Positions 1-29,245 of a stretch of DNA of 64,000 nucleotides are shown here, piece by piece. Both the position numbers and the translations under genes were made by a program. Within the stretch, counting starts at the first letter, position 1, and every line of letters starts with the position of its first letter. Below the pieces are notes generated by a model that did no database searches, was not told the origin of the DNA, and saw only the letters and a list, made by a program, of their open reading frames with translations. The stretch covers positions 124,001 through 188,000 of the IMG/VR virus record IMGVR_UViG_3300036766_000194, one strand, 5' to 3'.

Positions 1-168
1 GTAAGGATGATTTCCAGATTGTTACTTCTGACAAAACCCAAACCGATTTCCAACAACATAAGGCAGATCCTTTAGACCTGAGCAAAGGAACTAAAAAGAA
101 ATAAAGAAAACTACCCGAAAATAGAATTACAGGGTAGAATAAAAGAGCAGGAAAGAAGGAGAACATAG

Positions 169-555
169 ATGCCCGTATTAAAGTGCCCTGTATGTGAAAT
201 AGAGATGGACACCTTCGTCTTGAACGAGAGGGGGCGGTGTTCGTCTTGTGGAGCCACTACCGAGGACTATGTTAAGTTCATACATCTTTTAAAGAGTAAC
301 ATGAAGAAAGTTATTCCTAAAGAAGTGAACGTATTTGTAGATTTGGTGGCCGGGGAATTTGTTTCTTTGATAAAAGATAGGATTAATCCGATTCCTCGTG
401 GAGATAGGCGCAAAGATGTTCGTAAAAAGGACCGCCGTAATCGTTCTAGAACTCCTGGGAAGTTCAAGGCTGCTGTAGATGCTGTCTACATAACCGATAG
501 GAAATTAAAGGAGAAGAAAGATGGCAAAACAAATCAAACAAATCATAACAGTTGA
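169..555 (+). CDS. Zn-ribbon protein, hypothetical
   Basis: CPVC...CSSC at the N-terminus; AGGAGA SD upstream. Confidence 0.6.
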   Translation: MPVLKCPVCEIEMDTFVLNERGRCSSCGATTEDYVKFIHLLKSNMKKVIPKEVNVFVDLVAGEFVSLIKDRINPIPRGDRRKDVRKKDRRNRSRTPGKFKAAVDAVYITDRKLKEKKDGKTNQTNHNS

Positions 556-697
556 GTTGCTTTTGGACCCTGGACAAGAACCCTACTATTTCAACGAAGC
601 CAAAGTGGGGGGCATCAACTATATTGCCCTAGAAGAATTCTTCAAAGGCGTGGGATTCGTGGTGTTATCTTACGGGAGCAAAATCGAAACGAAGTGA
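521..697 (+). CDS. small hypothetical protein (58 aa, MAKQIKQIITVELL...)
   Basis: AGGAG upstream; its stop overlaps the GTG start of the next gene (GTGA); below the ORF-track cutoff. Confidence 0.6.
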   Translation: MAKQIKQIITVELLLDPGQEPYYFNEAKVGGINYIALEEFFKGVGFVVLSYGSKIETK

Positions 698-1374
698 AGA
701 CTCTTATTCATATTCTCGGACCTGGTGCATCAGGTAAGTCTACGCTATCCCGAGCTATTCTTCAATATGGAAATCCTGTTCCTTATGTAGCAGAAGCATC
801 CGATGTTGTTCCTTGTACAAACAAAGGAGTGATTGGGACTGAGAAGATTTCCTACGTCTGGTCTAGTAATGGAATAGCACTTGCCGGGAATTCTAAGAGT
901 GGTACGGACAGTATCAATGCCATTGATGCTCTTCCTAACGTCTTAGAACTTTGCTGGGCTAAAGTCCCCGCTGTTATTGTTGATCCAGTACGTTGCAGTA
1001 AGAAATTTGTAGATTGGATGAAAACCTATCCAGAGCCGCTTACCGCATTATTTGTGTACTTGGACCTTTCCCTGGAAGAAAATGTTCGTCGGTTGATAAA
1101 TCGTCGTTTTGAAAACAACATGAGGAGAAGTAAGGGACTCGCTATTCCTGAAACTTCTCTCCCTGAGAAAACCTATAGCAATATGTTGGCTTTTCGAGAA
1201 CGTGCTCAAGGAGTCTTCACACACGCCGGCAATACCTATAACCGCTTCCCTAAACTGTGTTTAGCACTCCCTGAGAGACTGTCTACAGGGGAAGGGGCTG
1301 CGGCGGTGCATAGTGCCCTAAAATATTTAGAAGGGCTTAAAGAGGCTAAGAATGACCTAATCGTGAACACATGA
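694..1374 (+). CDS. P-loop nucleotide kinase
   Basis: Walker A GPGASGKST at the N-terminus, NMP-kinase-like lid (RRLINRR), GTD motif. Confidence 0.75.
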   Translation: MKTLIHILGPGASGKSTLSRAILQYGNPVPYVAEASDVVPCTNKGVIGTEKISYVWSSNGIALAGNSKSGTDSINAIDALPNVLELCWAKVPAVIVDPVRCSKKFVDWMKTYPEPLTALFVYLDLSLEENVRRLINRRFENNMRRSKGLAIPETSLPEKTYSNMLAFRERAQGVFTHAGNTYNRFPKLCLALPERLSTGEGAAAVHSALKYLEGLKEAKNDLIVNT

Positions 1375-1402
1375 GACGGTACGCACAACCAGAATCGCTA
1401 AT

Positions 1403-1431
1403 TAACCTTTTTCAGAAAACTACAGTATTAT
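1403..1431 (+). promoter_or_regulatory. promoter of tRNA array 1 (TAACCT-N17-TATTAT); predicted +1 at the leader ATG
   Basis: matches a motif recurring about 10 times in the window; ATG lies 6 nt after the -10 box. Confidence 0.7.
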
Positions 1432-1437
1432 ATTAAC

Positions 1438-1521
1438 ATGAGACACATACTCTTATCATCGTATCTATCATCCAGTAGTTTGCTTACTGGATCCGAGCCG
1501 ATGAGAGGGTCTGTGGAATAA
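1438..1521 (+). CDS. attenuator leader peptide of tRNA array 1 (MRHILLSSYLSSSSLLTGSEPMRGSVE)
   Basis: codons 4-16 are all Ile(ATA)/Leu/Ser/Tyr codons read by the downstream tRNAs; overlaps the antiterminator strand. Confidence 0.8.
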   Translation: MRHILLSSYLSSSSLLTGSEPMRGSVE

Positions 1522-1545
1522 AGACAGACACTTAGAAGTAGAATC

Positions 1546-1584
1546 GGCCTCGGACCAAAGTACACGGTCCGAGGCTTTTGTTTT
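1546..1584 (+). terminator. intrinsic terminator (attenuator) before tRNA array 1
   Basis: 10-bp perfect stem GCCTCGGACC/GGTCCGAGGC followed by TTTTGTTTT; its 5' arm can instead pair with 1489-1502. Confidence 0.85.
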
Positions 1585-1597
1585 AGAAGTAAAGTTT

Positions 1598-1686
1598 GGA
1601 GCGGACGCCCTGTTGGAATGGGCACCTGTCTGTAAAACAGGAGTCCCCTGCGGATATTGTGGGTTCGAATCCCTCTCGCTCCACCA
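1598..1686 (+). tRNA. tRNA-Tyr(GTA)
   Basis: cloverleaf, CCTGT-CT GTA AA-ACAGG, long variable arm, CCA end. Confidence 0.92.
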
Positions 1687-1698
1687 AGTTTTATCTTT

Positions 1699-1784
1699 GC
1701 GCGAGTGGTGGAATGGCAGACACGCTGTCCTCAGAAGGCAGTCCTCGAAAGAGGGTGGAGGTTCAAATCCTCTCTTGCGCACCA
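1699..1784 (+). tRNA. tRNA-Leu(CAG)
   Basis: cloverleaf, long variable arm, A73, CCA. Confidence 0.93.
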
Positions 1785-1786
1785 AT

Positions 1787-1873
1787 GCCGAAGTGGCGGA
1801 ACTAGGCAGACGCGGCTGGCTCAAACCCAGTTGGTTAACAGCCATGGGGGTTCAAATCCCTCCTTCGGTACCA
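1787..1873 (+). tRNA. tRNA-Leu(CAA)
   Basis: cloverleaf, long variable arm, CCA. Confidence 0.93.
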
Positions 1874-1942
1874 AGTTTTTGGAGTTTACTGTGGTTTAGT
1901 TTAGAAAGGAGTAAACTAGGATAAACTCAGTAACTAGTTTGT

Positions 1943-2029
1943 GCGGGTATGGCGGAACTGGCAGACGCGTTGGACTTAAAATCCAATGGCCGCAAGGCCG
2001 TGGGGGATCGTGGCCCTCTACCCGTACCA
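1943..2029 (+). tRNA. tRNA-Leu(TAA)
   Basis: cloverleaf, atypical T-loop ATCGTGG, CCA. Confidence 0.88.
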
Positions 2030-2042
2030 AAGTTTTGATTTT

Positions 2043-2126
2043 CGGCGAGTGGCGTAATGGCAGCCGCGCTAGACTTAGAATCTAGTCCTTAAATGGGTGT
2101 GGGTTCGAATCCCTCCTCGCCGACCA
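2043..2126 (+). tRNA. tRNA-Leu(TAG)
   Basis: CTAGA-CT TAG AA-TCTAG, CCA. Confidence 0.92.
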
Positions 2127-2132
2127 AAATTT

Positions 2133-2218
2133 GCACCTGTGCCGGAACTGGCATACGGGCACGGCTGAGAACCGTGGAGCGAAAGCTCTTGTGAGTTCGA
2201 CTCTCACCAGGTGCACCA
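2133..2218 (+). tRNA. tRNA-Leu(GAG)
   Basis: CACGG-CT GAG AA-CCGTG, CCA. Confidence 0.93.
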
Positions 2219-2223
2219 ATATT

Positions 2224-2275
2224 CGCTAAGGATGGCGGAACTAGGCAGACGCATCCTTTAGGAACCCCAGTAGCG
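2224..2275 (+). pseudogene. tRNA-Leu D-arm remnant or tRNA-like hairpin
   Basis: 2233-2252 is identical to the D-arm region of Leu(CAA) at 1794-1813; no anticodon loop or T-arm. Confidence 0.5.
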
Positions 2276-2337
2276 AGTCCGGTTTTGATATGTGATATTA
2301 TATAGAGGAAGGGGTTTCTATATAAGATAACCTATAT

Positions 2338-2427
2338 GGGAAGTTGGCAGAGTGGCCTATTGTGCTGGTTTGCTAAACCAGAATGCTCGAAAGGGCATCA
2401 GAGGTTCGAATCCTCTACTTCCCGCCA
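2338..2427 (+). tRNA. tRNA-Ser(GCT)
   Basis: cloverleaf, long variable arm, G73, CCA. Confidence 0.93.
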
Positions 2428-2431
2428 ATTT

Positions 2432-2521
2432 GGACGGTTGACAGAGTGGCCTATTGTGCACGCCTGGAAAGCGTGATTACCCGAAAGGGTAACGAGTGTT
2501 CGAATCACTCACCGTCCGCCA
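2432..2521 (+). tRNA. tRNA-Ser(GGA)
   Basis: cloverleaf, long variable arm, G73, CCA. Confidence 0.93.
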
Positions 2522-2525
2522 GATT

Positions 2526-2675
2526 ATGAATCTAAAATGCAAGTGTGGTGAGGACAAATGGGAAGTTGTACAGAAAGCTGATGGTAAGAAGACTCTTACC
2601 TGCTTGTCTTGTGGTGCTGAGATTTTAATTTTCTTACTACTTCATCCTGAAAATAAGGATGTGAAGTGGGAGTAA
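2526..2675 (+). CDS. small Zn-ribbon protein (49 aa) inside tRNA array 1
   Basis: MNLKCKCGEDKW...TCLSCG; fills the tRNA spacer almost exactly. Confidence 0.55.
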   Translation: MNLKCKCGEDKWEVVQKADGKKTLTCLSCGAEILIFLLLHPENKDVKWE

Positions 2676-2682
2676 AGAGTTT

Positions 2683-2769
2683 GGAAGATGTGAGCGATGG
2701 CCGCTCGCTCGTCTCGAAAACGAGTCAAGCCGAAAGGCATAGGGTGTTCGATTCACCCATCTTCCGCCA
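2683..2769 (+). tRNA. tRNA-Ser(CGA)
   Basis: CTCGT-CT CGA AA-ACGAG, long variable arm, CCA; atypical D-arm. Confidence 0.88.
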
Positions 2770-2772
2770 AAT

Positions 2773-2855
2773 GGAAAGATCTGCCGACGGCAAAGGCAAT
2801 CTGTCTTGAAAACAGACGCACCGAAAGGTGCACGGTTCGACTCCGTATCTTTCCT
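2773..2855 (+). tRNA. tRNA-Ser(TGA), no encoded CCA
   Basis: TCTGT-CT TGA AA-ACAGA, long variable arm, acceptor stem GGAAAGA/TCTTTCC. Confidence 0.82.
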
Positions 2856-2873
2856 CATTAGTGAACTTTCTAT

Positions 2874-3194
2874 ATGGGTATAAAGTTCACAGTGTACAAA
2901 ACAACGAATCTTAAGAATGCCAAATTCTACCTTGGCTCTCATAAGACCGTTAATCCGAACGATAGCTATCTGGGTTCGGGTACACTTATCCTACGGGCGA
3001 TAGCCAAGTATGGAGAAGAGAACTTCAAAAAAGAAGTTCTCTTCGTATACGATAACGCTGAGAAAGCATTTAAGAAAGAATTTGAATTGGTAGAGGCTGA
3101 GAAGCAGGATAAACTCTGCTATAATTTAAGGCAGGGCGGCAGCGGTGGATTTGGGTCTTTGGTCGAAAGGACAATTTATTCTTATCTTGCGTGA
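2874..3194 (+). mobile_element. GIY-YIG (Seg-like) homing endonuclease, truncated
   Basis: VYKTTN..N.KFYLGSH, YLGSG and YNL..GG motifs; ends right after the catalytic domain; sits in a tRNA array. Confidence 0.8.
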
Positions 3195-3233
3195 AGATGG
3201 AAAACCTGATTTACAACTCGCTGAGTAGATTTC

Positions 3234-3322
3234 GCTGATGACCGTTGGTACGGGGAACCGCCTTATAAGCGGTCGCTCTAGATTAGAGCTTCTTTAGGGT
3301 TCGATTCCCTACGTCAGCACCA
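3234..3322 (+). tRNA. tRNA-Ile(TAT) with long variable arm
   Basis: acceptor GCTGATG/CGTCAGC-A-CCA, ACCGC-CT TAT AA-GCGGT, variable arm GCTCTA-gat-TAGAGC, T-loop TTCGATT. Confidence 0.85.
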
Positions 3323-3326
3323 ATTC

Positions 3327-3358
3327 AAGAGGCTACTCAGTTTCGCAGCCTCTTTTCT
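3327..3358 (+). terminator. terminator ending tRNA array 1
   Basis: AAGAGGCT...AGCCTCTT followed by a T-rich tract. Confidence 0.6.
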
Positions 3359-3398
3359 CAGCCTCTTTTCGCTTTTTCAACCTCTTATAGAGGGATAA

Positions 3399-5483
3399 AT
3401 GAAAGTATTCGTATTGATGGAAAATAGTAACCCTGTAGGGGTTACAAAATCCAAAACAAAGGCTGAGAAGTGGCTCTTCTCTCCCGACAACGACTACCTT
3501 ACGTTTGAAATGGAAGACGTCCTCAAGTCAGAAGAGAAAGCTCCCGCTGCTCCTGTTGAAGAAAAAGATAAGACTCCTCAAGAACATCTCCTCCGTAATG
3601 TGGATAAATTAGAAACTCAAATAGAACAAGCCGATAAGAAACTTAAAGAAAATATAGAGCAGTTGAAGAAGTTTAAGCGTAAGTCTAGCGTCCCTAAAGA
3701 AGCAGCTGTAAACTACAAAGAAATGTTTAAAAAATTTCTTGAAGCTGTTCCTAAATTTGAAGGGGCTGTAAATCAAGAAATTTCCTGGGCTAAGGAACAT
3801 TTAGAAAAGAAAGATCGTATCGTTTGGTATCTCCGTTGGATTCGTCTCGGTATGATACAAGATGCGGAAAACACCGAACAATTGCCCAAAGGAACCTTAC
3901 ATAAAGAGCTAGATGCTCTAAAAATTAAAAGTGGGAAGCAATACACCCCAGCGGACATCATTCGTGATGACTGGCGTTTTAAACGGGATCTTCAACACTA
4001 CATGAGCGTGGCCGATCAAGAAATGCAGTCTAAGCAATTTGGATATGAAACTCCTTTCGAACTCATGACTGAATTAAAGACCATTGACGATAAATTTAAG
4101 GAAAAGGTGCAGGAAGACGCTCGTCTATTAGAACCCCAAGAAGATGACAAAGTATTAATCAAGTTTCCTGATGGTTGGGCCTGGTGGGCATTGAACCGTG
4201 GAGTTTGCTCTGAGGAAGCTGAAGCAATGGGACATTGCGGTAATCAAGGAATGGTCACAGGAAATCAAATCATAAGTTTACGTGAGCCTAAAAGCAAAGG
4301 TGGTAAGAATTATTGGGTACCTCACCTGACTTTTATTCTTGACAAGGATACCGGGATGTTGGGAGAGATGAAGGGGCGGGGTAACGAGAAGCCAGCTGCT
4401 CGTTATCATCCATACATCATAGAATTGTTGGAAGGTGATCGTATCAAAGGAATTCGCGGTGGCGGGTATCAACCTTCCCACAATTTTGCTATGAATGACC
4501 TGTCGGAAGAAGATCGCACCAAGTTGGAAGAAGATAAGCCAGAACTTATGACTTTGCGTCGTTATATGGCGAAGAATAAAAACAAAATTGATGACTATGT
4601 TATTGAGAAGACTCAGGTTCTTCTAGGGCTAAATTCCGAAACATATGATGAACATAACAAGGGATGGACTATTGAAACTTGGAAAAGTGTAGAAAATTTT
4701 GTAGAAGAAAGGGGTAACAGGCAAGCTCGATGGCTTATGAAGTATGAAACTGGGAGAGAGACTCTAGATGTAGATTATGTAAATGAAAATGACGCCTTAG
4801 ATTTCATTGATCGTCTTCCCGATGCTGTGGTGAAGAATATTGGTTTATCATTAGAACAGAACCGTGCCGATGAATTAAAAAAATTCAGAGAAAACTATCG
4901 CCCGTCTGCGCCACATCCCCGGCGTCGGCAGTATACCTGGGAACCAGACAATAGTGGAGATATAAAAGACTTCATAAAATATCTAGAAGAAGAAGGAAAA
5001 AATTCAGAGGTAATGGATAACTTACGTACCGCTTATCGTTATGGGGTAGAAAGCGGAACCCTAAGTCGTATGTCTGAGGTTCTAACCAGAGCCGTGGAAG
5101 AAGCCACAGACAGTTTCGAACGTATTAAGATAGTGTATGAAGGAAACAATGTTTACTATGGCAAAATCTTCGCAGTTCTCAAATTGGTTGACGCTGTTGA
5201 CATAGCTATGGAATGTGAAGACGAGGGAAGCTGTACTTCTGATCCTACCGAAACTCTTGAGACCCTAAAAGTAGAGGCAAGTGAACAAGACGATTACTAC
5301 GATTTTGATGAAAAATATGCCATAAAGCACCTAATAGAAGTGTACGGCGAAGCTCCCGAAGTACCCGAAAAGACTAAAAAGCCAGTAGAGAATAAGAGTA
5401 GGAAGAAAAAGAAGAAACTCAAGTCTAGCTTTCTTTTAGAGGGAGATCAAATTGTCCGCCACACTACCAATACTGACACATAG
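3399..5483 (+). CDS. large phage protein with a PcfJ-like domain
   Basis: EAEAMGHCG...ISLR...PHLT...EMKGRGNEKP pattern; GAGGG SD. Confidence 0.55.
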   Translation: MKVFVLMENSNPVGVTKSKTKAEKWLFSPDNDYLTFEMEDVLKSEEKAPAAPVEEKDKTPQEHLLRNVDKLETQIEQADKKLKENIEQLKKFKRKSSVPKEAAVNYKEMFKKFLEAVPKFEGAVNQEISWAKEHLEKKDRIVWYLRWIRLGMIQDAENTEQLPKGTLHKELDALKIKSGKQYTPADIIRDDWRFKRDLQHYMSVADQEMQSKQFGYETPFELMTELKTIDDKFKEKVQEDARLLEPQEDDKVLIKFPDGWAWWALNRGVCSEEAEAMGHCGNQGMVTGNQIISLREPKSKGGKNYWVPHLTFILDKDTGMLGEMKGRGNEKPAARYHPYIIELLEGDRIKGIRGGGYQPSHNFAMNDLSEEDRTKLEEDKPELMTLRRYMAKNKNKIDDYVIEKTQVLLGLNSETYDEHNKGWTIETWKSVENFVEERGNRQARWLMKYETGRETLDVDYVNENDALDFIDRLPDAVVKNIGLSLEQNRADELKKFRENYRPSAPHPRRRQYTWEPDNSGDIKDFIKYLEEEGKNSEVMDNLRTAYRYGVESGTLSRMSEVLTRAVEEATDSFERIKIVYEGNNVYYGKIFAVLKLVDAVDIAMECEDEGSCTSDPTETLETLKVEASEQDDYYDFDEKYAIKHLIEVYGEAPEVPEKTKKPVENKSRKKKKKLKSSFLLEGDQIVRHTTNTDT

Positions 5484-5682
5484 AATTCCTCACATTGATC
5501 CAAGAATTTTTATCGGTATGTCGTATGGTGATGCTAAGACCCAAATTGAAGGATACGGTTATGTCTGTAAAGTTGTAAAATCTCCCACCAAGCCCCCTTG
5601 GCGTCAAATGAAAGATTACGACCCTCTCACCATCAATGTGTTCGTTATAGACAATAGGGTATCATCTGTCTATAGGGGATAA
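5452..5682 (+). CDS. small hypothetical protein
   Basis: IGMSY..AK...DY.P..INV.V....V....RG resembles small phage inhibitor-I78-like proteins. Confidence 0.45.
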   Translation: MSATLPILTHRIPHIDPRIFIGMSYGDAKTQIEGYGYVCKVVKSPTKPPWRQMKDYDPLTINVFVIDNRVSSVYRG

Positions 5683-5843
5683 TTACAAACCGAAGGGATA
5701 ATCCTCTGCGGTGATGGACAGATGCCATTGCTCAACCGGGTGACGAAGTTAGCTTAGAACACCACTACTTTTAGATGTCGTACTAATGACGTGGACGAGT
5801 GTAGTAGGGAAGAATAGATGATCGTTTTAGCCAACTGAACGTG

Positions 5844-6623
5844 CTAGATAGGCGCAAAATGTCCAGTAGCTAGACCGCTCACAAACCCGGTTACGAATCC
5901 AAATTTAAGCCAGCCCCATCTAGACTTACGGTCCTTTTGCTTCTGTAGTTCAATCTGCTTCACGGTGTTGGCTTCACTGTCGGCCAATGCCTTGATCTGT
6001 TCTTTTACAGTTTCTTTCAACGTCCCTATTTGTTCTGCCTGAGCCATAACCACCGCTTGTAAACCCGCAATCTGAATATCCTTGTTCTTTAATTCTGTAT
6101 CTTTGGCTGTAATAATTTGTTTGGAAACAGGAACCGTTTCAAGGTCGTTCAATATCTGGTGAGAAGCAGCATTACTTAGGGAAAGCATATCTCCATTAGC
6201 TGTGGCATTACCAACAGGAAGATTTTCTAGCACGGATAGTCGCGTTGCCATACCAATAGCATCTAACTTATCGTTCGCTGTTTTACGAATTATGAGACCT
6301 GCTTGTAGTGTAGAGATTGTATTGGCGAGTTTTTCGTTCTGGGCCGTGAGCGTAACCACCATATTCTGATACTGTTGAACGGCTTGTTGTGCAGCGGCAT
6401 CCTTCTGTACTTGACTTGCCTGTAGTTGGGCGACTACTTCTTTTTGCGAGGCGAGGGCTTGCGCACTCGCGTCCGCTTTTCTTTGCGCGACACCTTCTTG
6501 CCAGTTAATAAAACGAGAGTACCCAAAATACCCTGTAGCGAGAACGGCAAGTACAATTATGAGTCGTTCGTGATGTTTAATAAAATCTGATATTCCTGCA
6601 AATTCTTTTAAATTAAATGTCAT
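5844..6623 (-). CDS. membrane-anchored coiled-coil protein (possibly spanin-like)
   Basis: N-terminal TM segment, Q/A-rich coiled coil, C-terminal hydrophobic segment. Confidence 0.55.
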   Translation of the reverse strand: MTFNLKEFAGISDFIKHHERLIIVLAVLATGYFGYSRFINWQEGVAQRKADASAQALASQKEVVAQLQASQVQKDAAAQQAVQQYQNMVVTLTAQNEKLANTISTLQAGLIIRKTANDKLDAIGMATRLSVLENLPVGNATANGDMLSLSNAASHQILNDLETVPVSKQIITAKDTELKNKDIQIAGLQAVVMAQAEQIGTLKETVKEQIKALADSEANTVKQIELQKQKDRKSRWGWLKFGFVTGFVSGLATGHFAPI

Positions 6624-11633: not shown

Positions 11634-11914
11634 TGGTGTTCATCTTAATCAATTCTACAGCAACCAGAAGAGGCACAGGTTCTCTATACATTAAACGCAT
11701 CTGTTCTGCGCGTTCATCGTTAGTAGAATGTTGTCGAAAAGGAAGAGGCATACAACGGAACCAAACCGCTACAACATTACCTTCTTTATCTAACTCTATA
11801 TCAAGATGAGTAGTACCATGAATCGTTTTATTATGCCCGTAGACAGAGATTTCTTCTTTTTGTTTTCTCTTATCTAGCCACATCATCAAATAACTCACCA
11901 ATTGGCGAATCTTC
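11617..11914 (-). CDS. hypothetical protein
   Basis: GGAGGG SD before MKIRQLV; AVWFRC motif. Confidence 0.5.
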
Positions 11915-12034
11915 ATTCTTCCCTCCCTCCCTGTGGGTGCGGCGGCCAAGACGGACTCCGTAAGCACCGTTTCGTTTTGTTTATTCCATCCGATGCTGTG
12001 AGTGATGACCGCACTTCCAGTGCATCATCTTGAT

Positions 12035-14543: not shown

Positions 14544-15791
14544 TTAGTTAGTAAGTGCAACGCCCTGCCAAACGAAGTGGACACGACGGTTAAGTTGATA
14601 ACAGGATTCGCTCTCTGTCGGAGTAGGACAGAAGATGTTCGTCTTGCCCTTGGTGTCAGCGGCAAGGATGCGATGCGCATCAATTCCAGCTGCCAAAATA
14701 GCCTTATGGACAGTGTTGACTCGGTTCCTGCCGAGTTTCAGGTTATGATCGCTAGACCCGCGAACATCACAGGCGCTAACGATGGTGAAAGTAACTGCCG
14801 GATGAGCAACGAGGAACGCAATGTTCTGCTCCAAAACATACTGTTGCTTACTGTCAACGTTTGCCTTGTCATAAGCAAAAAACACGTCCTGCATTCTCTC
14901 ATTGAAAATAACTTCACCCGTCTTCACAGGAAGAGGAGTGACCGGAGTTACAGGGGTTGGTGTCACCGTGACGATGGGTTGTTGAAGAAGCACCGTGACA
15001 GGTTCAATCTTAACCTGTATGGGCACCCGAGGAACTACTGCAGCCACCGGAGCAGGAGCAGGTTCCGTCATACAATCTGCCATCGTGATGCCAGCCTTCT
15101 TTGCATTGGGTTCCTGAACAAGCAGCTTACAAGCTGCCAGCTTGGAACCAAGCAAAGCAAAAGAGCGAGCCGTTTCACGAATGTCGCAACCCTTGTCAAT
15201 CTTACCCCCGCCCATAGAGAATCCGAATCCTGCAGCTTGACCCGCGCCGCCGTATCCCTTAATACAAGGGGCAGAAGGCAAAGCATCGGGAGCAATAGCC
15301 GAAGCGGTTTGACGAACCTGCTTGTAGGTCGTGTTCACCGTGGTCGAATTGCCCGAGGAGTTATTGGACTGTTCCTGACCCTGGCTGGAATTACCCGAGT
15401 TGCTCACGCCTGCCGTGGCAGACGCAGAGCCACCCTGGCCGCCAGTGGCGGTATTGGTGTTAGTATTGGACGAGTTGCCGGAATTCTTGATGGTAGCGTT
15501 TCCGCCCTCGCCAATTCCGATGCCAACTCCCGTTGAGGTTGAAGTTGAGGAAGAAGTCGAAGAACTGGAGCCGCCGTTTCCGACGCCGCCGTTTCCGACG
15601 CCGCCATTTCCACCATTTCCACCATTTCCACCATTTCCACCATTTCCACCGTTGTTGCTGTTGGGACAGTTGGGATTGCCATTGCCGTGATCCTGGTTAT
15701 TGCCACAGTCGTCAGCAAATGCTGTGCCGACAGTGAAAGCAAGAGCAAGAATCAGCATAGAGATACGAAAGATACTACGATTGATATTCAA
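14544..15791 (-). CDS. exported Gly/Asn/Ser-rich protein with a C-terminal OmpA/Pal peptidoglycan-binding domain
   Basis: signal peptide (AFA-DD), GGN repeats, VFFAYDK...CDVRGS...N..LG..R...NRRV. Confidence 0.85.
   Translation of the reverse strand: MNINRSIFRISMLILALAFTVGTAFADDCGNNQDHGNGNPNCPNSNNGGNGGNGGNGGNGGNGGVGNGGVGNGGSSSSTSSSTSTSTGVGIGIGEGGNATIKNSGNSSNTNTNTATGGQGGSASATAGVSNSGNSSQGQEQSNNSSGNSTTVNTTYKQVRQTASAIAPDALPSAPCIKGYGGAGQAAGFGFSMGGGKIDKGCDIRETARSFALLGSKLAACKLLVQEPNAKKAGITMADCMTEPAPAPVAAVVPRVPIQVKIEPVTVLLQQPIVTVTPTPVTPVTPLPVKTGEVIFNERMQDVFFAYDKANVDSKQQYVLEQNIAFLVAHPAVTFTIVSACDVRGSSDHNLKLGRNRVNTVHKAILAAGIDAHRILAADTKGKTNIFCPTPTESESCYQLNRRVHFVWQGVALTN
15570..15652 (-). repeat. coding tandem repeats (GGN 9-mers, GGVGN 15-mers)
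   Basis: (CCATTTCCA)n and (CCGCCGTTTCCGACG)n. Confidence 0.85.
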
Positions 15792-17840: not shown

Positions 17841-18194
17841 TTACTTGCTTCCCAAAGCATCTTCATCAGTGTCCTTTTGAGACGTGTTGGATTCGTGATA
17901 CGCGGGTCCAATGTCCAGTTTGTGGCCACCGCGACCCTCTTCCCATTGCTGGATAACGTTCGCAACGACTTGAATGTCCGTCAACCCACCATGGTTGATG
18001 AGTAGCTTGTCAACTTCTAGGAGTTGATGGACCAAATCGGGGTGAATCCAATCGGGACTGAAAACAGAACCAGTTTCACGGTCGTTGAGCATTCGAGTTG
18101 CCAATAAGTGGTAAACCGGATACTGATAAAAAGGCCTCTTGAGTAGAGTCTCTTTAACGGGAGAGATTTCAATCGCAAGTTTACGTTTTTCCAT
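17841..18194 (-). CDS. hypothetical protein (leaderless)
   Basis: ATG 6 nt after TAACTC-N17-TAGAAT. Confidence 0.55.
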   Translation of the reverse strand: MEKRKLAIEISPVKETLLKRPFYQYPVYHLLATRMLNDRETGSVFSPDWIHPDLVHQLLEVDKLLINHGGLTDIQVVANVIQQWEEGRGGHKLDIGPAYHESNTSQKDTDEDALGSK

Positions 18195-22346: not shown

Positions 22347-22422
22347 TGGTAGGACCACAAGGATTCGAACCCTGGTATCGGAGGTAGAAGCTCCGCGCTC
22401 TGTCCGATTGAGCTATGGTCCC
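22347..22422 (-). tRNA. tRNA-Arg(TCT)
   Basis: CGGAG-CT TCT AC-CTCCG, CCA. Confidence 0.93.
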
Positions 22423-22426
22423 ACTT

Positions 22427-22502
22427 TGGAGGCCGGAGCGGGGTACGATCCCGCACACTTGGTTTAGGAAACCAGCGCACTGTCCATTTGTGCTATCCAG
22501 CC
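22427..22502 (-). tRNA. tRNA-Arg(CCT)
   Basis: anticodon loop TT CCT AA; T-loop ATCGTAC; CCA. Confidence 0.88.
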
Positions 22503-22507
22503 AAACT

Positions 22508-22582
22508 TGGTAGTCCCCACAGGACTCGAACCTGCAAAACGATGTTCGTAGCATCGTGTGATATCCATTTCACCAAGGGACC
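22508..22582 (-). tRNA. tRNA-Arg(ACG)
   Basis: CGATG-CT ACG AA-CATCG, CCA. Confidence 0.93.
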
Positions 22583-22585
22583 ACA

Positions 22586-22661
22586 TGGTATTCCCGGAGA
22601 GATTCGAACTCTCGTATCATCCTTCGGAGGAATGCGCCTGAGTCCACTAGGCTACGGGAAT
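22586..22661 (-). tRNA. tRNA-Arg(CCG)
   Basis: CATTC-CT CCG AA-GGATG, CCA. Confidence 0.93.
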
Positions 22662-22737
22662 AAACTCTATTAAACGCCGGATAGACTACAAAATTCTTCC
22701 GAAATCGTCTATCCGGTCACTATGACCGGGTATCTGG

Positions 22738-22812
22738 TGGATCCCAGAACTGGATTCGAACCAGTATGAATTCGTTCAGAGCGAATTAGGCTACCTATTG
22801 CCTCATCTGGGA
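22738..22812 (-). tRNA. tRNA-Gln(CTG)
   Basis: ATTCG-CT CTG AA-CGAAT, T1-A72, CCA. Confidence 0.9.
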
Positions 22813-22844
22813 ATTGAAACTCATGTCGTACAAGATGAAAAGCG

Positions 22845-22966
22845 GTAATGATAAGGTTCACCGCCGTCATCATTACGGAGAGCTTCTGTGACCTTTGGCA
22901 ATGCGCATTCACACTGGTCATGCTCTTCCTGCGGACACCCGCCGTTTAAACGAACCATATCATTAC
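22845..22966 (-). ncRNA. candidate structured RNA in a tRNA spacer
   Basis: 14/15-bp closing helix plus three nested helices. Confidence 0.5.
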
Positions 22967-22979
22967 TCCTTTCTAAAAT

Positions 22980-23054
22980 TGGCTCTCCGAGTAGGACTTG
23001 AACCTACAACCTTTCGGTTAACAGCCGACTGCTCCGCCATTGAGCTACCGGAGA
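22980..23054 (-). tRNA. tRNA-Asn(GTT)
   Basis: canonical Asn body, CCA. Confidence 0.93.
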
Positions 23055-23060
23055 ATTGAT

Positions 23061-23090
23061 AGGAGATGATAGTCGCGACTATCATCTCCT
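23061..23090. repeat. perfect 30-bp palindrome
   Basis: AGGAGATGATAGTCG-CGACTATCATCTCCT. Confidence 0.9.
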
Positions 23091-23097
23091 TCTTAAC

Positions 23098-23174
23098 TAG
23101 TCGGCCAATTCTTGAATTTTGGCATTTCCAGCTCTGCCAATGGCGGCTGGCGTCTTTCCGTTAAACGACGACTA
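23098..23174 (-). ncRNA. candidate tRNA-like four-way-junction RNA
   Basis: TAGTCG/CGACTA closes three hairpins; the first loop has GG, the last contains TTCAAG. Confidence 0.45.
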
Positions 23175-23176
23175 AA

Positions 23177-23252
23177 TGGCTGGGGCGGGAGGACTCGAAC
23201 CTCCAAGTACCTGAGTAACAGTCAGGCGCTGTACCGATTGAGCCACACCCCA
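23177..23252 (-). tRNA. tRNA-Asn(GTT), second divergent copy
   Basis: CCTGA-CT GTT AC-TCAGG, T1-A72, G73, CCA. Confidence 0.9.
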
Positions 23253-23270
23253 ATTGAACTTCTACAACTC

Positions 23271-23346
23271 TGGTGGAGCAGATGGGATTTGAACCCACAT
23301 CCTTCGCATTGCAAGTGCGCTGCGCCGCCAATTGCGCCACTGCCCC
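23271..23346 (-). tRNA. tRNA-Ala(TGC)
   Basis: G3:U70, anticodon TGC, CCA. Confidence 0.94.
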
Positions 23347-23355
23347 AAAGTTAAG

Positions 23356-23429
23356 TGGTAGGGCTAGGGAGAATCGAACTCCCGTCTACTGATTAAGAGT
23401 CAGCAGCTTTACCATTAAGCTATAGCCCT
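23356..23429 (-). tRNA. tRNA-Lys(CTT)
   Basis: GCTGA-CT CTT AA-TCAGT, CCA. Confidence 0.93.
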
Positions 23430-23439
23430 AAAATTGCCC

Positions 23440-23572
23440 ATATTTTTATCCCACGTCGGCTTTACGTTACCTTACGATAACGAGCGTGTGATGCCTTAGA
23501 CTTACGTCCGTAACAGGCGGCATCCACCCGGCTTATTTGCGTGAACGGAGGCAAGCTACCCCCGTCACGCTT
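23440..23572 (-). ncRNA. candidate structured RNA with GNRA-capped hairpins
   Basis: three stems, two GTAA tetraloops on the minus strand. Confidence 0.5.
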
Positions 23573-23579
23573 CATAAAA

Positions 23580-23655
23580 TGGTATCCCCGGCAGGATTTG
23601 AACCTGCGTATCTGGTTTCGTAGACCAGTACCTGAGTCCACTAGGCTACGGGGAC
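23580..23655 (-). tRNA. tRNA-Arg(ACG), second copy
   Basis: CTGGT-CT ACG AA-ACCAG, CCA. Confidence 0.93.
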
Positions 23656-23666
23656 AAAGTAACTTC

Positions 23667-23742
23667 TGGTGGGTCCGGAGGGTTATGATCCCCCATAACG
23701 CTGTTTAAAAGACAGCTGCTTTGCCAGTTAAGCTACGAACCC
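23667..23742 (-). tRNA. tRNA-Lys(TTT)
   Basis: GCTGT-CT TTT AA-ACAGC; T-loop ATCATAA; CCA. Confidence 0.9.
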
Positions 23743-23752
23743 ATTTAAAACT

Positions 23753-23829
23753 TGGGGTGTAGGACGGGTCTCGAACCCGCTTTAACCGGATTCACAGTCC
23801 GGCGCGTCACCTGTTTCGCCTCCTACACC
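23753..23829 (-). tRNA. tRNA-His(GTG)
   Basis: encoded G-1:C73, CCGGA-CT GTG AA-TCCGG, CCA. Confidence 0.92.
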
Positions 23830-23831
23830 AT

Positions 23832-23993
23832 CGTTTAGTGCTTCCTTGTAAAAGGCAGTTTCAGTCCATTTCTTTTTCAAATGGGCATGAACAGCCATAT
23901 CAGTTACTCCTAGTTTCCTAGCACACGGTCCACCATTGTTGTTTTCTCATGAACCCTTCAATGCCCTTTGTAAGAGATACTGAAAGTCACGAA
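23832..23993 (-). ncRNA. candidate rod-shaped RNA between tRNA-Trp and tRNA-His
   Basis: nested long-range helices TTTCAGT/ACTGAAA and CAAAGGGCAT/ATGCCCATTTG. Confidence 0.45.
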
Positions 23994-23995
23994 TG

Positions 23996-24067
23996 CAGGA
24001 TGGGAGGGACTCGAACCCCCGTAAACGGTTTTGGAGACCGTTGTCCTGGCCGCTGAACGACCATCCT
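23996..24067 (-). tRNA. tRNA-Trp(CCA), no encoded CCA end
   Basis: ACGGT-CT CCA AA-ACCGT, A1-U72, G73. Confidence 0.9.
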
Positions 24068-24073
24068 ATTAGT

Positions 24074-24246
24074 CTTACCGCCTGAGCGGTAAGCTGGGTT
24101 CTATTGATTTATGAGATTAAGTGAGTCGGTGGGAACTACGTTGACCCTCAACCTCGAAATTGCGAACCTCAGCTTACCGCCAGAAACACGAGCCTTACGC
24201 TCTATGCCACTGTCGCTTCGCTTCGCTCCGATTTCGTTTCGTTGAG
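24074..24246 (-). promoter_or_regulatory. attenuator-like alternative helices before tRNA array 2
   Basis: 1:2 (24231-24246 with 24147-24160), 2:3 (24164-24180 with 24086-24101), 3:4 (24086-24093 with 24074-24081). Confidence 0.7.
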
Positions 24247-24251
24247 TTCAT
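24195..24251 (-). CDS. leader peptide of tRNA array 2 (MNSTKRNRSEAKRQWHRA)
   Basis: 13 of 17 codons after the ATG are read by tRNAs of the downstream array; follows the promoter motif. Confidence 0.78.
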   Translation of the reverse strand: MNSTKRNRSEAKRQWHRA

Positions 24252-24269: not shown

Positions 24270-24298
24270 AGAATACGGGATATCTTTCAAAAAGGTTA
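24270..24298 (-). promoter_or_regulatory. promoter of tRNA array 2 (TAACCT-N17-TATTCT)
   Basis: same motif and spacing as the array-1 promoter. Confidence 0.7.
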
Positions 24299-24648
24299 AT
24301 TAGCGATTTTCTTCTTAACAATGCCTTCTTTAACCCATTTCTTGTGACATTCGTTGATAACTTTAATTATCAGTTTTTCCATCTTCTTATTCTTCGTCAT
24401 GATACATCCAAGGCAGTGTCGCGATCAGTCGGTCTCGTTCGCTCCTCTGGCGCAGGCGCTTCGGTCCCGGTTGGCTCTTCTGGGACCGACTCAAACTGTA
24501 TGTGAACGTCCTCCTCAAAAGCATGCCCATTCTGCCAACCCAACTGCCCAGAGAATTTTTGTTGAATTCTCTATTTTACGATGGCGCATCCAATAGAGAA
24601 GACCTATCGTAGCCACCACCCCAAGAACAACGATTATAAAGGTAAGCA

Positions 24649-27368: not shown

Positions 27369-28346
27369 TTAACGAGCTAAAACTTCTTTGGTCATCTTAA
27401 TAATGAGGCTGTTGATTAGGTCGTAGTCCGGAGTCTTAGGAACAGCGAATTCTGTAAGGCTGTTGACTTTAGTGATCATTTCATCGGCGTAGGTTGTAAT
27501 TTGTTCATAAGACCAAGAACCTTGGCGGATAGCAAGTAACTCAGCAGCATCGGGGCGACGAACATGGCACTTGCCCTCAGTCAGGATTTCATACCCGGTC
27601 CTTAACAGCCGCACCAGATGAGCACCGTGTTTGGTGTCGTAACCAAACTTCACTTCCATCTCACGACGGTGGGGGTTACGTTCAGCCATCCAAGTGACAT
27701 ACTGATCCCGTTGCTTCTTTGCCATATCGTAAAGATGCTTTTGATACTGTTCACTGGGGCATACAATGCCTAATCCCTTTAGTTGCTCAAGATATTGGTC
27801 CTGCTGGACCATGCTTTGAAAAATAACAAATGGTTCCAACCGCTTGACCATGTTCTCACCAAAGCGCCAAGCCACCCAATCCCGACTGATCTTACCTTGA
27901 CGGACTAGGGGTTCAAGAACCTTTATCGCTTCAAATTCTTGAGCGATCCATTTTTGATGAGAACGGATTCTGTGAAGCTGTGCCTGGGCATACCCCACAT
28001 AGGTGCTAGCACACTTCTGAGAAAGAAAGCTGTCGCGATTGTAGCGTAGATGCCACATGATAGGATCTGCCAATATGACATCGCTATGGTTAACGAAGAG
28101 TAATTCCATAACGTTTGGATTGTTAGCAATAGCGAGGTTGGCAAACTTTCGCAGAGAATACAGAGTGGTGTCGCGTTCTTTAGACTGTTCAATCTGTTGA
28201 TCAAAAGCCTTTAAACCGAAGAAGTATTCTTCGGCGGGAACAAAGATTCCAGCGAAATCTTCATCAGACGTGGGAGTATTCATCCCGTAGGCGTGCGATC
28301 CTACACGGGTCTTGTAGATAACAGTATGTTCATTCCGTCCGTTCAT
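27369..28346 (-). CDS. Pol-beta-family nucleotidyltransferase (RlaP/YcgL-like, RNA repair)
   Basis: VGSHAYG..TPTSDED..GIF, NPN..E.L, GYD.K...H.VRL, LLAIR.G. Confidence 0.85.
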   Translation of the reverse strand: MNGRNEHTVIYKTRVGSHAYGMNTPTSDEDFAGIFVPAEEYFFGLKAFDQQIEQSKERDTTLYSLRKFANLAIANNPNVMELLFVNHSDVILADPIMWHLRYNRDSFLSQKCASTYVGYAQAQLHRIRSHQKWIAQEFEAIKVLEPLVRQGKISRDWVAWRFGENMVKRLEPFVIFQSMVQQDQYLEQLKGLGIVCPSEQYQKHLYDMAKKQRDQYVTWMAERNPHRREMEVKFGYDTKHGAHLVRLLRTGYEILTEGKCHVRRPDAAELLAIRQGSWSYEQITTYADEMITKVNSLTEFAVPKTPDYDLINSLIIKMTKEVLAR

Positions 28347-28351
28347 TACAA

Positions 28352-29245
28352 CTATTCTACTGGAATAGAAGGAGAAAAGCTATATTCAAAATAGGATTTA
28401 AGGGAAGCATCTTTCCACGACATTCTATGAGGACTTCTGCTGGTAGGAGCAAACTCTTCCTTAACGGCGTCTATATACATGGAAAAGGTAAAATCGTCCC
28501 CCATGTAAAACTTGTCCCAACCTTTTTGAGTAAAGAATCTCTTAATTTTCAATTGTTCAATAGCGAGGTTATCAAAGGATAGAACACATTTTCCAAAATA
28601 CTTGGCAATGTACATCTTCCATCGGTTAATTTCTTTTTCAATACCCTCATTGTAGAACGCCAACCCCCGTCCGTAATGCTTATAACCTAGGACGAGAATT
28701 TTAGCCTTTGAATCATATGCCAGTAGGTCGTTTATGACCTCAACTTTGTCTTTACCAGCGATAACATGGTAGACGATATTTTCTGTAAGGGATTTAACCC
28801 GACCAAGACAAGAAAGACTCTTAGAATTTAAAACCGAGATTCCCAAACCTTTGATGTATCCTTTTGAAATCAGGGACACCAGGTCGGTTTCGTATCTCTT
28901 AACATGACCTTGATTGACTGTCAGGTTTGCGATAAACCCCAGTTCTGTTAGACGTTTCAGAAATTCAGCCAGAGAAGGATGGGATAGAGGATTTCCTCCT
29001 CCTATAGCGAGTTCCGTCCCAACAGAAAGACCCTTTAACGTATCCAGTAAATGTCCCAAATCCGCATGAGTTCCCGCCGTAGTGGACATCTCATGACAGT
29101 AAGCGCACCCAAGATCACAATAGTTTGTGATCTTGATGTCTATGGACTCCGGAAATACAGGCATGGGAGTACCTTCATACTCCCGTGTCTTAGTTCCATC
29201 GTCCAGGATGGTGACTATTGTATTTCCGTTTTGGTATCTGATCAT
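28352..29245 (-). CDS. radical SAM protein
   Basis: CDLGCAYC (CxxxCxxC), GGGNP. Confidence 0.9.
   Translation of the reverse strand: MIRYQNGNTIVTILDDGTKTREYEGTPMPVFPESIDIKITNYCDLGCAYCHEMSTTAGTHADLGHLLDTLKGLSVGTELAIGGGNPLSHPSLAEFLKRLTELGFIANLTVNQGHVKRYETDLVSLISKGYIKGLGISVLNSKSLSCLGRVKSLTENIVYHVIAGKDKVEVINDLLAYDSKAKILVLGYKHYGRGLAFYNEGIEKEINRWKMYIAKYFGKCVLSFDNLAIEQLKIKRFFTQKGWDKFYMGDDFTFSMYIDAVKEEFAPTSRSPHRMSWKDASLKSYFEYSFSPSIPVE

Follow-up and report, generated by a model that had tools for sequence, protein, structure and literature searches.

A ribosome-mediated (leader-peptide) transcription attenuator is the probable identity of the element at positions 1393-1585, which lies directly upstream of a phage array of class-II tRNA genes and would gate its transcription. 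The element comprises a short ORF built from codons read by the downstream tRNAs, followed by an intrinsic terminator whose 5' arm can alternatively pair with the 3' part of the ORF. The array is therefore likely to be transcribed only when those codons are decoded slowly. Leaders of the same design were found in front of other tRNA arrays, including in unrelated phages, and no description of such control of tRNA arrays was found in the searchable literature, although most subscription journals were not covered and an older description cannot be excluded.

The DNA analysed (the window) was a stretch of 64,000 nucleotides, corresponding to bases 124,001-188,000 of the 299,875-bp IMG/VR contig IMGVR_UViG_3300036766_000194, which belongs to a jumbo phage. 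Its clamp loader was most similar to that of the cultured Tunturiibacter phage Tunturi_5 (42.8% identity, far ahead of other phages), and the host is therefore probably an acidobacterium. ARAGORN identified 24 tRNA genes in two arrays, the first containing only class-II-shaped tRNAs. The features of the two loci were as follows.

1393-1412 (+), conserved 20-nt promoter-associated motif of array 1 (AATCGCTAATTAACCTTTTT)
1402-1431 (+), sigma-70-like promoter: -35 TTAACC at 1402-1407, an 18-nt spacer and -10 TATTAT at 1426-1431
1438-1521 (+), leader ORF of 27 codons (MRHILLSSYLSSSSLLTGSEPMRGSVE)
1447-1485 (+), control codons 4-16
1444-1461 (+), segment 1, which pairs with 1499-1515 to form the anti-antiterminator helix 1:2
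1489-1515 (+), segment 2, of which 1489-1502 pairs with segment 3 (antiterminator) and 1499-1515 pairs with segment 1
1543-1556 (+), segment 3, the 5' arm of the terminator, shared by the antiterminator
1566-1585 (+), segment 4 (1566-1576) and the U-tract TTTTGTTTT
1598-3322 (+), tRNA array 1: Tyr-GTA, Leu-CAG/CAA/TAA/TAG/GAG, Ser-GCT/GGA/CGA/TGA and a class-II-shaped tRNA with anticodon TAT
24270-24308 (-), array-2 promoter: the same 20-mer (24308-24289), -35 TTAACC at 24299-24294 and -10 TATTCT at 24275-24270
24195-24251 (-), array-2 leader ORF of 18 codons (MNSTKRNRSEAKRQWHRA), with a short 5'UTR carrying a GAGAG Shine-Dalgarno-like element
24074-24181 (-), array-2 alternative helices: A (24181-24170) and C (24081-24074), which are the same sequence, both complementing B (24096-24086)
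22347-24067 (-), tRNA array 2: Trp, His, Lys x2, Arg x5, Ala, Asn x2, Gln

The control codons of leader 1 were initially recognized in a sequence-only reading, and that description was confirmed. All 13 consecutive codons are read by array-1 tRNAs and together they cover 10 of the 11 anticodons, with only CTG (Leu-CAG) missing. To determine whether such a match could arise by chance, about 128,000 13-codon windows in the six frames of the 64 kb were scored. The stretch at 1447-1485 was the only one with 13/13 codons in the array-1 set and the only locus to reach 10 distinct anticodons, whereas the next unrelated loci reached 10/13 codons and 8 or fewer anticodons.

The ATG of leader 1 lies 6 nt after the -10 element, which predicts a leaderless mRNA, the transcription start being inferred. 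The ORF has no Shine-Dalgarno element, so its translation would depend on leaderless initiation. By itself the promoter match is no better than chance in the region. However, it sits within the 20-mer that occurs only twice in the 64 kb (0.02 expected by chance), both times in front of a tRNA array. Exact and degenerate scans for the motif in IMG/VR, JGI metagenomes and GTDB genomes returned only the source contig, a near-identical strain (L008/L013/L014) and chance hits without tRNAs. Identical leaders were present in that strain (L008/L013).

The terminator of array 1 consists of a stem at 1546-1556/1566-1576 with a 9-nt loop and a U-tract running to 1585 (dG -22.7 kcal/mol, z = -4.6). A simple scan had missed it only because its loop limit was 8. 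The terminator ends 13 nt before tRNA-Tyr, leaving no room for a promoter, and the array can therefore only be expressed by read-through. The alternative pairing of 1489-1502 with 1543-1556 comprises 13 pairs with two bulges, the 14-nt 5' arm starting at 1543 rather than 1546. Its dG was -19.6 to -22.2 kcal/mol, compared to -22.9 to -24.6 for helix 3:4, and 0 of 300 shuffled upstream sequences did as well. In the minimum-free-energy fold of the full leader, helix 1:2 was followed by the terminator. Sequences for all four segments of a classical attenuator were therefore present, although 1:2 lost to 2:3 in the window's transcript when truncated before segment 4.

The most likely mechanism is stall-dependent antitermination. 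A sigma-70-type promoter would start an mRNA at or next to the ATG at 1438. The first 16 codons contain the 13 consecutive Ile (ATA), Leu, Ser and Tyr codons, exactly the amino acids served by the array. If decoding of any of these is slow, the ribosome would stall on segment 1, segment 2 would pair with segment 3, and RNA polymerase would run into the tRNA genes. If decoding is fast, the ribosome would run through segment 2 to the stop at 1519 and then either lie between segments 2 and 3 or let helix 1:2 re-form, so that helix 3:4 folds and transcription ends at about 1585. The outcome would be negative feedback, with the array transcribed until the supply of charged tRNA for its own codons is sufficient. 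In the absence of expression data, translation of the ORF, the polarity of the switch and the signal sensed are inferred. Loss of host tRNA from any cause would also induce the array. The link to anticodon-nuclease defences postulated in the sequence-only reading remains speculative, and demand-driven feedback on tRNA supply is the more economical explanation.

Ribosome masks were modelled on the transcript truncated before segment 4, both for the window and for L010, a diverged metagenomic relative. With the A site at codons 4-16, helix 2:3 formed in both. With the A site at codons 17-27, segment 2 was masked and the antiterminator was lost in both. The geometry is not exactly that of trp, contrary to the sequence-only reading, since the stop codon lies 3' of segment 2 and a ribosome parked there covers about 1504-1531 without masking 1489-1502. 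It may separate segments 2 and 3 sterically, or 1:2 may re-form after release. Furthermore, in the window the untranslated truncated transcript formed 2:3 at equilibrium. These two observations would suit a reversed polarity, in which smooth translation promotes read-through and the array is made only when translation already works. This was considered very unlikely, because of the mask results, because in L010 the untranslated transcript folded into 1:2 and left the terminator arm free, and because control codons on segment 1 with segment 2 next is the stall-to-read-through layout of known attenuators.

The second array in the window has its own leader behind the same 20-mer. Of the 17 codons after the ATG, 13 are read by array-2 tRNAs, covering 10 of its 11 anticodons, and the ORF was top-ranked in the window for that set, tied with one unrelated locus. 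The two leaders were cross-specific, with 0/13 codons of leader 1 matching array 2 and 2/17 codons of leader 2 matching array 1. Downstream, helix A:B was the minimum-free-energy structure. The B:C hairpin has no U-tract and no canonical terminator was found, leaving the read-out of this leader unresolved.

The comparative test suggested in the sequence-only reading, that leader codons should track array content, was then applied to related phages. In L010/L011, the neighbouring kinase-like protein is 68% identical. The core of the 20-mer (TCGCTAATTAAC), the promoter spacing and -10 element, the 6-nt gap to the ATG, and the frame, start and TAA stop of the ORF were all retained. The 28-codon leader has 15 consecutive in-set codons and now includes CTG, thereby covering 11 of 11 anticodon types. 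Every difference within the control stretch stayed inside the Leu/Ser/Tyr set, namely five codon substitutions (two Ser codons at codons 12-13 may instead reflect an in-frame shift) and an in-frame 6-nt insertion. Compensatory double changes were seen in all three helices: two in 3:4 (1552-1570 GC to AT; 1555-1567 CG to TA), one in 2:3 (1494-1552 CG to TA) and two in 1:2 (1445-1514 and 1456-1504). Positions 1494, 1552 and 1570 therefore change together in all three strands.

A DNA search of window positions 1-6000 against isolated phages found only tRNA-level hits, one of which led to Tunturi_5. Most homologues of the kinase-like protein lie in Tet/JBP DNA-modification islands with no tRNAs, and the contig of one relative (L016) ends inside the promoter motif. 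Relatives of the 694-aa downstream protein in IMG/VR have no adjacent arrays.

Tunturi_5 (PP885688.1), the nearest isolated relative, has three arrays, each preceded by a short ORF and a canonical intrinsic terminator. Leader 1 (positions 11847-11945 of the retrieved Tunturi_5 locus, L029) is visibly homologous to that of the window, with shared LSSY and LSSS blocks. Its array contains a tRNA-Cys among the Leu, Tyr and Ser tRNAs, and its leader has two TGC codons. There is no TAT-anticodon tRNA and no ATA codon, whereas in the window and in L010 ATA opens the control stretch. The codons read by the leader's own array, and the anticodons of that array covered, were 15/26 and 10/11 for window leader 1, 13/17 and 10/11 for window leader 2, and 14/31 and 8/9, 24/36 and 14/15, and 33/48 and 15/15 for Tunturi_5 leaders 1, 2 and 3, respectively. 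Off-diagonal values were much lower, and Tunturi_5 leader 2 was the unique best locus in 42.7 kb. The tracking was imperfect, however, as leader 1 of the window lacks CTG although tRNA-Leu-CAG is present, and Tunturi_5 leader 1 has one CTA and one TCA codon without matching phage tRNAs.

The region upstream of every array in the retrieved phage loci was also scanned. In Ralstonia phage RsoM2USA, a 25-codon ORF (17891-17968 of its locus, L031) covers 10/10 anticodons of a mixed array of Pro, Cys, Glu, Tyr, two Leu, Trp, Ser, His and Val, and is followed by a terminator-like hairpin. Only 5 of 80,036 windows were as good, and all five overlapped the ORF itself. No sequenced relative was found for this leader region. 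Xanthomonas phage XacN1 gave no signal. Vibrio phage D479 and Pseudomonas phage Bitten have single arrays covering nearly all amino acids, so the test has no power there.

Four Microbacterium phages, Zooman, A3Wally, Pumpernickel and Cece, share a 13-17-codon ORF whose ATG lies 6-7 nt after a TACCAT or TATCAT -10 element. Its core is Tyr-Glu-Leu-Asp-Phe-His-Leu-Glu-Pro, and it sits in front of a Pro/His/Met/Asp/Glu/Phe/Leu array, with Tyr added in two of the phages. Composition alone was not significant for the Zooman leader (442 of 80,236 windows), and this case rests on conservation instead. Zooman and Pumpernickel differ in the core by four synonymous and no nonsynonymous changes, which provides the only, indirect, support for translation, and A3Wally has a Leu/Phe swap that keeps the composition. 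Each phage has a terminator whose 5' arm pairs with the end of the ORF, and that pair of segments differs between the two subgroups. A TTGACA sits in the terminator loop and again near the first tRNA. Extra promoters may bypass the switch.

In all 11 leaders with a terminator, the stem started 20-31 nt after the stop codon. The best partner of the 5' arm lay at the 3' end of the ORF, in its last codons in most leaders and at and just after the stop codon in RsoM2USA and Cece. The constant gap would also suit a simple coupling sensor that reads the general state of translation, such as ribosome availability, host shut-off, amino-acid starvation or transcription-translation coupling, with codon composition mattering little. 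In line with this, each tRNA is represented by only one or two codons and the match at the isoacceptor level is barely above expectation. When the peptide was kept and synonymous codons were resampled by phage usage, the observed anticodon coverage was reached with P = 0.10 for window leader 1, 0.024 for L010, 0.12 for window leader 2, and 0.34, 0.68 and 0.30 for Tunturi_5. The proposal in the sequence-only reading that each isoacceptor is sensed is thus weakly supported, and the strong signal is which amino acids are present. A general sensor nevertheless appears unlikely, since it would not need the array-specific amino-acid sets of different leaders in one phage, the change of content together with the array, as with Cys in Tunturi_5, or the 10/10 coverage of an odd mixed set in RsoM2USA.

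It was also considered whether the terminator is an ordinary timing barrier, overcome at a set stage of infection by a phage antitermination factor or another promoter, with the ORF being either a real small protein or a coincidence. The peptides of leader 1 and of L010 have a basic N-terminus followed by a Leu/Ser-rich stretch, like a signal peptide, the conserved 20-mer reaches upstream of the -35 element and could bind a regulator, and array 2 lacks a canonical terminator. However, the leaders of window array 2, Tunturi_5 arrays 2 and 3, RsoM2USA and the Microbacterium phages do not resemble signal peptides, and in one Microbacterium phage the peptide order is shuffled while the composition is kept. 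This explanation also does not account for the array-specific codon sets, or for the pairing of the 3' end of the ORF with the terminator arm and its covariation, and was considered improbable. The leader as a decayed tRNA gene was rejected, as there was no ARAGORN or Rfam signal and this would not explain the codon content.

Phage tRNA genes are usually discussed in terms of why they are kept, namely codon-usage mismatch, host tRNA degradation or escape from anticodon nucleases, and how their expression is controlled is essentially unknown. The paper describing Tunturi_5 counts 43 tRNAs and does not contain the words leader, attenuator or terminator. An attenuator-like leader was also looked for before E. 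coli pheV, but the 100 nt upstream of pheV in MG1655 show no such ORF or terminator. It is somewhat more likely than not that leaders mirroring their arrays are a general device of phages from unrelated lineages (acidobacterial jumbo phages, a Ralstonia jumbo phage and Microbacterium phages), with each array transcribed on demand when decoding of its own codons slows, including when host tRNAs are depleted or cleaved during infection. If so, phages measure decoding speed for defined codon sets and feed the result back on tRNA synthesis, a direct autoregulatory loop in which the product is also the sensed molecule and which extends leader-peptide attenuation to RNA genes. Arrays sorted by tRNA type, as in the window and in the three blocks of Tunturi_5, may then reflect regulatory units each with its own sensor, and the leaders would be a compact, sequence-readable record of which tRNAs a phage regards as limiting.

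The closest known systems are the multivalent leader-peptide attenuators of enterobacterial amino-acid operons (thr, ilvGMEDA, ilvBN, leu, his, trp, pheA), which have a short translated leader with a run of regulatory codons and mutually exclusive helices 1:2, 2:3 and 3:4, the last being an intrinsic terminator. Several amino acids are sensed by one leader in thr and ilv. Here, the genes controlled are tRNA genes rather than biosynthetic enzymes, the leader mirrors a set of up to 15 tRNA species, the stop codon lies 3' of segment 2 and the mRNA is probably leaderless. The leader did not belong to any curated Rfam leader family, the best match being His_leader at 18.3 bits against a cut-off of 49 (E = 0.6), and nothing was found for the array-2 leader. 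T-box riboswitches also report on the tRNA pool by transcription attenuation, but bind one uncharged tRNA directly through a specifier codon and the T-box motif, without translation. No T-box hit was obtained at E <= 1 in either leader. Leaderless polycysteine short ORFs act as Cys-responsive attenuators in mycobacteria (bioRxiv 10.1101/834739), where the codon content of an ORF at the 5' end of an operon sets the signal. Those ORFs sense one amino acid and control protein-coding genes of its metabolism. The Microbacterium phage leaders are actinobacterial examples of the same start mode.

Within array 1, the following features were noted:
3234-3322 (+), the last tRNA of array 1, with anticodon TAT
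2874-3194 (+), a SegE-like GIY-YIG endonuclease ORF
2496-2675 (+), a small Cys-rich ORF
about 2226-2290 (+), a fragment that looks like the 5' half of a Leu tRNA

The last tRNA, whose anticodon reads AUA, exhibited a class-II shape with a 6-bp variable-arm stem, discriminator A73 as in the Leu and Tyr tRNAs, and an unusually short D region. It was at most 61/89 identical to any other tRNA of the array. Potentially, it carries either Ile, or Leu through anticodon-blind LeuRS. Of note, ATA is the first control codon both in the window and in L010, the diverged metagenomic relative. The endonuclease ORF scored 23.6 bits against a cut-off of 25, and the small Cys-rich ORF had no Pfam hit. In the near-identical strain L008, a duplication of about 60 nt was found between tRNA-Leu-CAA and tRNA-Leu-TAA, together with deletions that destroy tRNA-Ser-CGA (L008:2040-2170 and 2920-2945), although this may be an assembly error. 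The leader of this strain nevertheless still carries the TCG codon.

Two features were noted upstream of the leader:
694-1374 (+), a gene for a 226-aa P-loop kinase-like protein
1371-1400 (+), the remnant of a gene that is present in relatives

The kinase-like protein has 59% identical homologues (loci L004-L006) that sit next to Tet/JBP and ADDT genes in integrase-bearing islands of bacterial contigs, suggesting a role in DNA hypermodification. Between the kinase gene and the promoter motif, relatives carry a gene of 107-120 aa (L010:729-1091 and, in a further relative, L016:1057-1380). The window keeps only the first ten or so codons of this gene (MRRYAQ...) fused to the motif, so the gene was deleted in this lineage.

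For array 2, the following features were noted:
24074-24181 (-), the region following the array-2 leader
about 24135-24098, a C-rich, G-poor stretch within this region
15571-15651 (-), a low-complexity repeat
27369-29245 (-), an RlaP-family nucleotidyltransferase next to a radical-SAM-like protein

The array-2 leader is followed by two identical segments of 8-12 nt that compete for one complementary strand, and the downstream hairpin has no U-tract. The C-rich, G-poor stretch lies between them and could be a Rho loading site. The low-complexity repeat reads as a long Trp/Lys/Arg run in one frame, and it dominated the raw codon-count scan for array 2. The nucleotidyltransferase (RNA-repair pathway, E = 2e-26) and its radical-SAM-like neighbour lie a few kb from array 2. 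Similarly, Tunturi_5 encodes a CCA-adding enzyme and an RtcB-type ligase near its arrays.

In the GenBank record of Microbacterium phage A3Wally (MZ150783.1; L036), the tRNA annotation names the tRNAs as if the anticodons were codons. For example, 'tRNA-Trp(tgg)' is a Pro-TGG tRNA, and the whole array is mislabelled. In all four Microbacterium phages, the terminator loop contains TTGACA (L034:17225-17245 in one of these phages and homologous sites in the other three, L036-L038). In all four, a further TTGACA or TGACAA lies about 25 nt before the first tRNA. Additional promoters may be nested in or behind the attenuator.
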